From NCBI GenBank assembly GCA_002269645.1, contig NIVC01000195.1, positions 62,001 through 126,000 of the forward strand: a stretch of 64,000 bases of DNA, in the 5' to 3' direction. The position numbers and the translations under genes were made by a program. Positions 10,601 through 13,600 of this stretch are shown piece by piece. Origin of the DNA: Macrostomum lignano (Eukaryota). Each line of letters begins with the position of its first letter. The first letter of the stretch is position 1. The notes under the pieces are model-generated. The model was not told the origin of the DNA. It saw only the letters and a program-made list of their open reading frames with translations, and searched no databases.

Positions 10601-13600
10601 CGAGCACCTGAAAGTGGCGCGATAAATTTTCAAATTTGTTTTAACTGACCCGAAAAATTAGTTCATAAATTATTACTTGATAAATTTTAGCAATGAAAAG
10701 TGCTTGGCAATTTAAACGCGCTCAAATCGCTTCTTAGAGATTCTTTTCTATTGTCAGTCGCTGTTTCCTCGTATGATTTTCAACTTGCTGCTGCTTTGGC
10801 TTGGCTGAGCAGGCTTTCAGTAATAAACTAGATTGCGCAACTGCTTGCAAAACTTATTTGTAAAATCAATGATTTCTTTCTCTATTCTTTGACGGGGCGT
10901 CGGGAGCTCACAGACTCTCGCGTCAGAGGGCCCTTGGTTCGAATCCACTAGTCTAAAGGCACAGAGAGAGTACATGCCTGACGATTCGAAAGTCAGGACA
11001 TAAGTCAGTCAGTCTGTGCACCCTGTGTGAGCGTGTGCGCGTGTGCATCTCAGGGGTCAGCTAAATGGGGAGGACTGCTGCTCGCCGAAATCTCAACTTG
11101 ACAATCAGCAAATCCGCCTACTAACAGTAGTTAAACAACTCACCCAGGTTGTTGGTGAAGCCGGTGCGCAGGGTGCAGCTGCGCAGGTCCGTCACCTTCT
11201 TCTTGTACTCCGGCCTGATCAGCAGCAGCAGCCGCAGGCCCCAGAAGCTGCTGTGGTGCAGAGTCTGGTACTCGATGCCGAAGGCCAGCTCCAGCTCCTT
11301 CTTCACGTGCTCCTCCCACTTGCGCTCCGTGTCCGAGGACTCCTGCGTGGCCAGGGCGTACAGGTCGTGCGGGATCGATGAGAGCGCCGGGTCGCGCGAC
11401 TTTCCGCTTCCGATGGACTTCAGCCAGGGCAGCAGCGACCAGCGCGGCCACTCGCCAGCTGGAGGGTGCGGGAGATGGACGGGCGTGTGAGTGCGCGTTA
11501 GATACCAGGTTTCCTGAACCAGGTGTCCTGAACCAGGTGTCCTGAACCAGGTGTCCTGAACCAGGTGTCCTGAACCAGGTGTCCTGAACCAGGTGTCCTG
11601 AACCAGGTGTCCTGAACCAGGTGTCCTGAACCAGGTGTCCTGAACCAGGTGTCCTGAACCAGGTGTCCTGAACCAGGTGTCCTGAACCAGGTGTCCTGAA
11701 CCAGGTGTCCTGAACCAGGTGTCCTGAACCAGGTGTCCTGAACCAGGTGTCCTGAACCAGGTGTCCTGAACCAGGTGTCCTGAACCAGGTGTCCTGAACC
11801 AGGTGTCCTGAACCAGGTGTCCTGAACCAGGTGTCCTGAACCAGGTGTCCTGAACCAGGTGTCCTGAACCAGGTGTCCTGAACCAGGTGTCCTGAACCAG
11901 GTGTCCTGAACCAGGTGTCCTGAACCAGGTGTCCTGAACCAGGTGTCCTGAACCAGGTGTCCTGAACCAGGTGTCCTGAACCAGGTGTCCTGAACCAGGT
12001 GTCCTGAACCAGGTGTCCTGAACCAGGTGTCCTGAACCAGGTGTCCTGAAGTCCATCTTCGACCAATTTTCGTGTCTTCTTTAGCAATAAAATATGCAAT
12101 TTAAACCTGAAGTCCATCTTCTTTAATAATTATATTTCCTAAAATCCATAAGGCCGCGGTGCAGCCAAGGACCACTGTATATAGTTATATTCAGTGGTCC
12201 TTGGGTGCAGCAGCCACGTGACTTGGCGACGAAAACAGAAAAATTCCACAGGCTTGCGACGCTTTGGTTCGCAGCGCCCGGGACGCCCGCCTCCCAGCCG
12301 AGGAAGCGGCAGCTGTTGCAAATTAGCTGCGCACCCCGCCGAGTTCCTGGAACTCCGCGGCTGAGTTGCGATTTTTAATTTGCGAAATTCCCCCATCAGC
12401 CAAATGCGCGCAAGGCAGAAAGGTGACTGTCTGCCTGAAGGCTTGCAGTCCGCTTTGCAGGACATTGGGACGGATAAGGCAAGCGGATGCGGGTGGGCAG
12501 CTCGGTCTGAACCTCAGCCTGGACCAGAGCTGCACCGCAGCAGTGACCGCTAGCGGTTGAATTGCTTATTGAACCAGACCTAGTCCCAGTCCCAGTCCCA
12601 GTCCCAGTCCCAGTCCCAGTCCCAGTCCCAGTCCTACTCCTCAGTCCCAGTCTCATTCCCATTCCCACTCCCATTCCCACTCCCATTCCCAGTCCCAGTC
12701 CCATTCCCATTCCCAGTCCCAGTCCCAGTCCCATTCCCATTCCCAGTCCCAGTCCCAGTCCCAGTCCTTACTCCTCAGTCCCAGTCTCATTCCCATTCCC
12801 ACTCCCATTCCCACTCCCATTCCCAGTCCCAGTCCCATTCCCAGTCCCAGTCCCAGTCCCAGTCCCAGTCCCATTCCCAGTCCCAGTCCCATTCCTGAGT
12901 CCCAGTCCCATTCCCATTCCCAGTCCCAGTCCCAGTCCCAGTCCCAGTCCCATTCCTGAGTCCCAGTCCCATTCCCAGTCCCAGTCCCAGTCCCAGTCCC
13001 ATTCCCAGTCCCAGTCCCATTTCTGAGTCCCAGTCCCATTCCCAGTCCCAGTCCTGAGTCACAGTCCCAGTCCCAGTCCCAGGCCCAGTCCCAGTCCCAT
13101 TCCCAGTCCCAGTCCCATTCCCAGTCCCAGTCCCAGTCCCATTCCTGAGTCCCAGTCCCATTCCCAGTCCCAGTCCCAGTCCCAGTCCCATTCCCAGTCC
13201 CAGTCCCATTTCTGAGTCCCAGTCCCATTCCCAGTCCCAGTCCTGAGTCACAGTCCCAGTCCCAGTCCCAGGCCCAGTCCCAGTCCCATTCCCAGTCCCA
13301 GTCCCATTCCCAGTCCCAGTCCCAGTCCCATTCCCAGTCCTAGTCCTGAGTCCCAGTCCCAGTCCCATTCCTGAGTCCCAGTCCCAGTCCCAGTCCCATT
13401 CCCAGTCCCAGTCCCATTCCCAGTCCCAGTCCCATTCCCAGTCCCAGTCCCAGTCCCATTCCCAGTCCCAGTCCCAGTCCCATTCCCAGTCCTAGTCCTG
13501 AGTCACAGTCCCAGTCCCAGTCCCATTCCTGAGTCCCAGTCCCAGTCCCAGTCTCATTCCCAGTCCCAGTCCATTCCCAGTCCCAGTCCCAGTCCTAGTC

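Follow-up and report, generated by a model that had tools for sequence, protein, structure and literature searches.

A 38-bp palindrome in an intron of a SHIP-like gene of the flatworm Macrostomum lignano: a probable P-superfamily remnant and possible excision scar

The question

How does a eukaryotic genome come to carry a palindrome of only 38 bp that is nonetheless flanked, on both sides, by a perfect copy of the same 8 bp? We examined this question for positions 12166-12203 of a 64,000-nucleotide stretch of the Macrostomum lignano genome (assembly GCA_002269645.1, contig NIVC01000195.1, positions 62,001 to 126,000 of the forward strand). This whole stretch is called the window in what follows, and coordinates refer to it unless another contig is named. 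An earlier note, made from the sequence alone, had offered two possibilities for the palindrome, an exceptionally small mobile unit or the scar of an excised P-like transposon. Our answer comes in two parts of different strength. Very probably, the 38-bp element consists only of the two ends of a P-superfamily (P-element or THAP9-type) DNA transposon. As for how the interior was lost, we put the chances at about even that the element is a P-type excision scar, emptied by transposase excision and subsequent repair. Either way, it is in all likelihood a flatworm P-type remnant and a fairly ordinary trace of transposon activity.

Structure of the palindrome

The locus is made up of the following parts.

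12158-12165, no strand: left copy of the target site duplication (TSD), GGTGCAGC, read directly and identical to 12204-12211
12166-12182, plus strand: left terminal stub, 17 nt of terminal inverted repeat (TIR), CAAGGACCACTGTATAT, from direct reading and a structure scan
12183-12186, no strand: central AGTT, junction or inserted bases and hairpin loop, from the fold
12187-12203, minus strand: right terminal stub, 17 nt, reverse complement CAAGGACCACTGAATAT, from direct reading and the fold
12204-12211, no strand: right TSD copy, GGTGCAGC, read directly

The palindrome and its perfect 8-bp duplication, whose positions can be read directly, are thus as the earlier note described them. That note divided the 38 bp into two 12-bp arms around an AT spacer (CAAGGACCACTG at 12166-12177, TATATAGTTATATT at 12178-12191 and CAGTGGTCCTTG at 12192-12203). 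The 12-bp arms stand, but the spacer is not neutral and is itself mostly inverted repeat, the whole being better written as 17 nt, AGTT and 17 nt, with a single arm mismatch at position 13 (A instead of T in the right arm). As single-stranded DNA the element folds into a stem of 12 bp plus 4 bp with AGTT as its loop (ΔG -13.7 kcal/mol, z = -8.6). A microRNA-like hairpin gene was considered and set aside, 38 nt being too short. The features of a miniature inverted-repeat transposable element (MITE), namely TIRs, a target duplication and no coding capacity, are all present.

A chance palindrome that happens to lie within a chance repeat, or an artefact of assembly, would need no transposon at all. 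Some properties of the locus lend themselves to this explanation, since the 8-mer GGTGCAGC is commoner in the window than expected (14 copies against 4.1) and the palindrome lies between two minisatellites. However, when the whole window was scanned for perfect 8-bp direct repeats bracketing perfect inverted arms of at least 8 bp with a spacer of up to 80 bp, only two structures were returned, 12166-12203 and a 54-bp sibling, whereas 200 locally shuffled windows gave a mean of 0.015 matches with 8-bp arms and none with 12-bp arms. Because the shuffled windows contain almost no such structure, and because its sole counterpart in the window shares its termini, we exclude chance, and give it together with assembly artefact a negligible probability.

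The sibling is listed here in the same form.

26302-26371, no strand: 54-bp sibling micro-element with its TSDs (element 26310-26363), from the structure scan and fold

It reads TCTTGTCT / CAAGGACCACTGTATATAGCTAT ATATATTC ATAGCTATATACAGTGGTCCTTG / TCTTGTCT, with perfect 23-nt arms (CAAGGACCACTGTATATAGCTAT) around an 8-nt centre, and folds with a ΔG of -23.3 kcal/mol (z = -11.7). Its first 19 and last 12 bases are identical to those of the 38-bp element, whose bases 18-19 (AG), just beyond the left stub, thus also agree with the sibling's TIR. Since the termini are the same and the 8-bp duplication is another one (TCTTGTCT vs GGTGCAGC), the sibling is, judged from these sequences, an independent insertion of the same subfamily. 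The two micro-elements also share an asymmetric, non-palindromic centre, TATATT, and a pairwise alignment of the elements alone derives the 38-bp form from the 54-bp form by the loss of 4 bp of TA repeat, the loss of 12 bp flanked by CA, and one C>T substitution. A MAFFT alignment of both loci with their flanks was uninformative.

Assignment to the P superfamily

Which transposons have these ends? A broader scan of the window (perfect TIRs of at least 9 bp, up to 6 kb apart, with a perfect 8-bp duplication) and a search of the window with the 12-mer terminus, allowing two mismatches, identified two longer relatives.

26552-26746, no strand: 179-bp MITE with its TSDs (element 26560-26738), from the broader TIR scan
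45339-46479, plus strand: 1.1-kb non-autonomous P-type element with its TSDs (element 45347-46471), from the 12-mer search and Pfam

The 179-bp MITE has a TIR, CAGGGACTACTCAAACACCGGGACGGGAAA, that is identical between the two ends at 30 of 30 positions, and a perfect 8-bp TSD, ACATGTAT; it is largely foldback, with more than 50 nt of matching arms, and looks young. The 1.1-kb element has the TIR CAAGGACTACTTAAGAACACAGGACG and the TSD GACGATAT, and CAAGGACTACTT stands at both ends of 45347-46463. Together with the two micro-elements, these make four elements in the window that share CA[AG]GGAC[CT]ACT termini and 8-bp duplications, and the broader scan of the window returned nothing else real. 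A scan of the window for one-sided remnants (an 8-bp repeat bracketing a CARGG start or a CCYTG end) was swamped by minisatellites and yielded nothing new.

Eight extra bases, ACTCCTTG, separate the right TIR end of the 1.1-kb element from its right TSD (46464-46471). They agree with the terminal AGTCCTTG at 7/8 positions, and may go back to a tandem duplication of the terminus or to a former end of the element.

The superfamily can be read from what the longer elements encode. The 1.1-kb element contains a THAP-domain open reading frame (ORF) from 45616 (Pfam PF05485, E = 7e-8), whose protein is 98% identical to M. lignano A0A1I8IQ90; the ORF has an intron, and a 1-bp frameshift at the C-x2-H motif, VCRK(H)W. 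The THAP domain is the only coding remnant of this element, and THAP sequence is all that the window holds of a P-type transposase. We used HMMER to search 1.84 billion representative proteins with the THAP protein, obtaining 786 matches, and examined nine relatives longer than 500 aa taken from the best 150 of these. All nine carry TNP-like_RNaseH_N, TNP-like_GBD or Tnp_P_element, and none a hAT domain. Many short THAP-only proteins were also seen in M. lignano (P0001, P0003, P0005 and the P0008 cluster).

Three longer elements extend the link between termini and coding sequence. The first, L002 (M. lignano GCA_002269645.1, NIVC01000736.1), is a 3,483-bp element at 8935-12417 with a perfect TSD, AGCAAATG, and a 15-nt terminus, CAAGGACTACTTAAG, that is the same as that of the 1.1-kb window element. 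It encodes a THAP domain and about 200 aa homologous to the C-termini of P-type transposases (BLAST E = 4e-30 to P0006 and 1e-26 to P0128), and on this homology is an internally deleted P-type element; Pfam gave no match for the C-terminal ORFs of the 1.1-kb and L002 elements. The second, L005 (an ENA contig, element 120-3150), has an intact gene for an 868-aa THAP and TNP-like RNaseH transposase between CAAGGACAACTAGATAT and CAAGGACTACTAAATAT. Its termini are of the type CAAGGAC...ATAT, and its place in the P-type lineage follows from termini and coding gene, not from a duplication. The third, L006 (an ENA metagenome contig, 4806-7727), is a full-length P-type element, apparently intact and autonomous, with an 823-aa protein combining THAP, RNaseH and GTP-binding domains, a perfect 40-nt TIR, CACGGCGCACTG, and a perfect 8-bp TSD, GTACGTAT. 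This element adjoins a long interspersed nuclear element (LINE) and makes a useful reference for the clade.

The micro-element terminus matches both ends of L005 at positions 1-7, 9-11 and 14-17 (14/17), while its first twelve bases, CAAGGACCACTG, agree at 10/12 with CAAGGACTACTT of the 1.1-kb element and at 9/12 with the 40-nt TIR of L006. Two things by which P-superfamily elements are recognised are therefore found here: TIRs homologous to those of elements that encode P transposases, in the case of the 38-bp element, and perfect 8-bp duplications, which flank the 38-bp, 54-bp, 179-bp, 1.1-kb, L002 and L006 elements. On these sequence grounds we place the CAAGGAC lineage, with its CAAGGACCACT termini, in the P superfamily. 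The suggestion of a P-like origin is borne out in that the same termini and 8-bp duplications recur on elements with P-type THAP or transposase sequence. An autonomous copy with the TIR CAAGGACCACTGTATATAG was not found among the sequences searched, where relatives with sister termini encode P-type domains. Because no coding parent of the exact subfamily turned up, we stop at calling the 38-bp element a P-superfamily insertion remnant with high, rather than full, confidence.

The hAT transposons had to be weighed as an alternative source, since an 8-bp TSD, YARNG termini and a THAP domain are not exclusive to the P superfamily. Transposons of the hAT type likewise make 8-bp duplications, CAAGG fits their YARNG terminus, and THAP domains combined with hAT dimerisation domains exist, as in THAP12; moreover, Pfam places Dimer_Tnp_hAT within the window itself, at 63293-63979 on the minus strand. 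Against this, every element with a CA[AG]GGAC terminus and coding sequence shows P-type homology and none hAT homology, and there is no CAAGGA-type terminus near the hAT fragment. Furthermore, when hAT transposons are excised, hairpins form on the flanking DNA and none of the repeat sequence stays there, and so a hAT origin would account for the locus only if it were read as a MITE. We ruled out the hAT reading on the coding evidence and consider it very improbable. The fragment at 63293-63979 (minus strand) covers the C-terminal part of such a transposase (Dimer_Tnp_hAT E = 4.5e-8); a long tail of coiled-coil-like sequence comes after it, and the gene continues past the end of the window.

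Loss of the interior

Given two transposon ends, the question becomes how the sequence between them was lost. In Drosophila, P transposase leaves 17-nt 3' repeat tails on both donor flanks (PMC7776569; PMC2895639). The repair junctions described by Chan, Yu and McVey in 2010 keep both 8-bp TSDs and at most 17 nt of each repeat, and are joined either at 1-3 nt of microhomology or through 1-49 inserted AT-rich bases, often templated nearby (PMC2895639). One such junction reads CATGATGAAATAACAT + GTTA + TATGTTATTTCATCATG, that is, 16 nt, GTTA and 17 nt, and synthesis-dependent strand annealing (SDSA) combined with end joining is common in flies (PMC2895639).

The anatomy of the 38-bp element agrees with these junctions, and all the marks of such a footprint, namely both TSDs, no more than 17 nt from either repeat and an insert that is short or templated, can be recognised at 12166-12203. 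With regard to the insert, the junction is spanned by the 7-mer TTATATT (12185-12191), which recurs unchanged 55 bp upstream (12130-12136), where about 0.04 would be expected by chance, a weak hint that the upstream copy was the template for the junction bases. In the sibling at 26310 the same marks are present only if SDSA-type synthesis, or a long templated insert, is allowed for.

The sequence of events that would give rise to such a scar is as follows. A longer member of the CAAGGACCACT family would have inserted and duplicated its 8-bp target, GGTGCAGC, an event to which the duplication and the family's termini attest. By analogy with Drosophila, a P-type transposase would later have excised the element, cutting the transferred strand at the tip of the repeat and the other strand well inside it. 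A single strand of the repeat (17 nt in Drosophila) would thereby have stayed attached to each flank as a stub, and end joining would have sealed the two stubs head to head together with AGTT, giving the 38 bp that can be read between intact target copies. The sibling would be a scar of the same kind from a second insertion, in which a few bases of repair synthesis took place on each side before joining.

Another way to view the two micro-elements is as a family of 40-55-bp units, made up of two repeats and moved by a P-type transposase, that inserted at both sites in their present form; the 38-bp copy would then be a centre-deleted descendant of a 54-bp-like master. The window offers evidence of this kind, for it holds two copies within 64 kb, at independent targets, with perfect 8-bp TSDs and identical outer 19 and 12 nt, while containing no long parent of the subfamily. 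The common TATATT centre and the derivation of 38 bp from 54 bp point in the same direction. MITEs that consist of TIRs only are, moreover, found in another superfamily, in the 80-bp MADE1/MiHsmar1 of Hsmar1. However, the two copies differ in length and in junction, which speaks for scars, as the earlier note had predicted, and not for a mobile family. We found no copy in 64 kb of further M. lignano sequence (L002-L004) or in JGI metagenome contigs. In addition, DNA of 38-54 bp is too stiff for the pairing of its own ends, and lies far below any P-type element known to move, the smallest non-autonomous elements of Drosophila being about 0.5 kb and having internal binding sites (PMC7776569).

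The internal sites can be followed further. Across the four longer elements with CA[AG]GGAC-type termini (45347-46463 and 26560-26738 in the window, L002:8935-12417 and L005:120-3150), the subterminal motif GGACG occurs 21-34 nt from the tip at 8/8 ends, and it is absent from both micro-elements. The motif partly repeats the terminal AAGGAC. We regard GGACG as a candidate binding site for the transposase (THAP), with the need for it argued from the Drosophila P element, which requires internal transposase-binding sites beside its TIR (PMC7776569). By that analogy, micro-elements that lack the motif can probably not be mobilised. Missing cis sites thus join unequal length as points against a mobile micro-MITE, an explanation that we think unlikely.

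Interior sequence could also disappear without any transposase cut, if a longer, foldback-like MITE at each site decayed in place through deletion or slippage at the centre of its palindrome. The centre of a long palindrome is readily deleted, the related 179-bp MITE is largely foldback with its 30/30 termini and extended arms, and all of the differences between the micro-elements are central, in TA-rich repeats that favour slippage. On the other hand, decay requires two independent deletions, each leaving only about 17-27 nt at both ends, and has no intrinsic reason to stop at 17+17; for P elements, the documented and frequent route to exactly such a product is excision followed by end joining (PMC2895639). 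We therefore hold spontaneous decay to be an improbable explanation, on a par with the mobile unit; a small share of the probability we give to none of the explanations.

Thus, the differing lengths and junctions, the missing GGACG and the 17+4+17 structure make us lean towards an excision scar, and a number of observations weigh against that choice. Excision itself is a step that we supply, our searches having turned up neither an empty site nor a fuller allele nor a parent with the TIR CAAGGACCACTGTATATAGCTAT. With 23 nt left on each side, the sibling exceeds 17 nt and calls for template-dependent synthesis or a longer stagger. The shared TATATT centre, and the derivation by two deletions and one substitution, would be explained equally well if both copies descended from a micro-element or if a palindrome decayed at its centre, and the single subfamily to which both belong is without a long member in the window. 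For the arms to disagree at position 13, the parental TIR must have been imperfect or a mutation must have followed; TIRs of that kind are known, and the two ends of L005 likewise differ at position 13. Finally, we know of no cleavage stagger for any P-type transposase outside Drosophila.

The expectation that a scar here would show P-type cleavage chemistry in this lineage was thus an overstatement, given that the sibling's 23 nt per end go beyond a 17-nt stagger unless extra synthesis took place. The micro-element pair is compatible with a 17-nt staggered cut and does not demonstrate one. A stronger statement, that either the unusually long stagger of about 17 nt, so far known from the Drosophila P transposase, is conserved in a lophotrochozoan P/THAP9-type enzyme recently active in Macrostomum, or a P-type enzyme has moved record-small eukaryotic MITEs without subterminal sites, is one that we put forward tentatively and would not expect to hold.

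Comparison with known systems

The closest likeness is to the excision footprints of the Drosophila P element, which according to Beall and Rio (1997) reportedly arise by end joining at 17-nt 3' tails. In both cases two TSDs enclose up to 17 nt of each repeat, set head to head around a short AT-rich insert, with a total of about 30-80 bp. They differ in host, in repeat sequence, and in the sibling's 23 nt per side; the footprints of Drosophila were recovered in assays of excision, whereas the 38-bp element is fixed in a genome and is known from its sequence alone.

Interrupted gap repair (SDSA with end joining), the route that KP-type elements represent, has a similar outcome in that the ends are kept, the interior is lost and the join is made at microhomology. 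The 1.1-kb window element and the 3.5-kb L002 element are KP-like, retaining the THAP domain (and in L002 also the C-terminus) without the catalytic core. Drosophila derivatives of this sort, however, measure 0.5-2.8 kb (PMC7776569), as against 38 and 54 bp here. As a separate observation, the THAP-only 1.1-kb element is reminiscent of the KP-type repressor elements of Drosophila.

Among units made of TIRs alone, MADE1/MiHsmar1, the 80-bp MITE of the human mariner Hsmar1, is likewise a palindrome of two repeats with few central bases and no coding capacity. It belongs, however, to another superfamily, with a TA duplication, is twice as long and exists in thousands of near-identical copies, whereas here there are only two, of unequal length. 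Non-autonomous P-type elements with inverted repeats and 8-bp duplications are represented by BuT5 of the Drosophila repleta group (PMC3698922) and by zebrafish Pdre (PMC10983969). Unlike the micro-elements, neither is cut down to bare repeats, BuT5 being about 1 kb long and Pdre having 13-bp TIRs, CATACCTGTCAAC. Non-autonomous P-type elements of this kind imply a P-type transposase that is active now or was so recently.

Searches for further copies and orthologous sites

Orthologous alleles were sought through the genes of the window. Exact protein matching with six window ORFs and P0001 (the ORFs including the 313-aa and 241-aa intronless genes, two ORFs that adjoin or cross the element, and the LINE reverse transcriptase (RT) ORF) found none on record. 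Homology searches with the SHIP exons, and with a composite of the exons of a neighbouring immunoglobulin-like (Ig-like) gene and the 313-aa ORF, gave no near-identical protein, the best M. lignano Ig match having 61% identity. In a scan of JGI metagenome contigs for CAAGGACCACTG N6-36 CAGTGGTCCTTG there was a single match, L001, which is a whole-contig assembly palindrome and irrelevant.

Homeologous M. lignano loci do offer one comparison of filled and empty sites for another element. A 679-bp element occupies L004:6802-7480 (TIR CCCTATTGGAATAAG, TSD TGGGGGCT), and the corresponding site in L003, 7586-7593, is cleanly empty. The pair points to recent activity of a different family with 8-bp TSDs, and shows that the comparison of empty with filled homeologs works in Macrostomum.

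An AT-rich Logan contig (L007, SRR25569785) encodes a 666-aa P-type transposase and, at L007:4073-4125, has a 37-bp CAAGGACTTC...GAATGTCTTG unit between perfect 8-bp copies of TTAAAAGT. This may be a third ends-only remnant, from an unrelated genome, although its arms match poorly and such repeats are common in the contig.

Significance

If the scar reading is true, fixed footprints would make it possible to read, from sequence only, the geometry with which P/THAP9-type transposases cut outside insects, where their biochemistry is to our knowledge almost unexplored. They would also record recent excision by cut-and-paste P-type elements in a flatworm that serves as a model of regeneration. Mobility of the micro-elements, were it the true reading, would instead lower the known minimum size of a eukaryotic transposable unit. 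Remnants of this size fall below the reach of the M. lignano repeat annotation, which dropped everything shorter than 200 bp (PMC5730564). On the scar reading, they show where in introns and promoters an element once sat, which could help to map P-type activity and place it in time, and could guide the choice of a native transposase and TIR pair for Macrostomum transgenesis.

Host gene and neighbourhood

The gene around the 38-bp element was identified from exon translations.

11420-13600 (approximate bounds), minus strand: host intron of a SHIP-like gene, splitting the inositol 5-phosphatase domain, from exon translations and Pfam

Two minus-strand exons flank 12166-12203, one at about 13.6 kb and the other, which starts PPAGEW, at about 11.42-11.14 kb. 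Because these exons, once spliced, match Pfam Exo_endo_phos2 without a break over positions 2-112, the element lies in an intron that splits the 5-phosphatase domain. The other parts of the gene lie on the same strand in the domain order expected of it: SH2 occupies 24.4-25.0 kb, another exon of the phosphatase 3.7-4.0 kb, the C2 domain of SHIP type 2.2-3.2 kb and SAM 1.6-2.5 kb. The description of the palindrome as lying inside a SHIP intron is thus confirmed, and nothing suggests a functional effect on the gene.

At the other end of the gene, the 54-bp sibling and the 179-bp MITE lie 197 bp apart, both between the SHIP 5' end and the divergent 313-aa gene. P elements prefer promoters, and this placement fits that preference (PMC7776569).

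The host intron also holds the two minisatellites between which the palindrome lies, one with a 14-bp unit (11378-12050) and one with a 6/12-bp unit (about 12570-13400). Minisatellites are unusually dense in the window, with units of 6-40 bp and several of them within introns; they occur at 232-760, 11378-12050, 12570-13400, 17021-17926, 20230-21488, 22261-23000, 28785-30657, 52237-52420, 53557-54560, 55338-56579 and 57222-58067. This density agrees with the tandem repeat content of about 15% reported for the M. lignano genome (PMC5730564).

Nested within a SHIP intron on the opposite strand is a multi-exon gene (5261-10307, plus strand) with Ig-like exons of the WFKDG/WLKDG type and a tail of QQFAPGQP repeats. 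Its database matches are Ig-domain proteins, the best being an M. lignano Ig-like protein at only 61% identity. Two intronless ORFs on the plus strand, at 27558-28499 (313 aa) and 34495-35244 (249 aa), are distant paralogues of one another (25% identity, E = 8e-11), and in Pfam neither reaches the curated cut-off of any family. LINE-type ORFs, recognised by eye in the translations, lie at 36980-39777 on the minus strand, where an RT-like ORF of 538 aa is followed by one of 418 aa (36980-38236), and a separate ORF on the opposite strand, at 41606-42016 (plus), is endonuclease-like.

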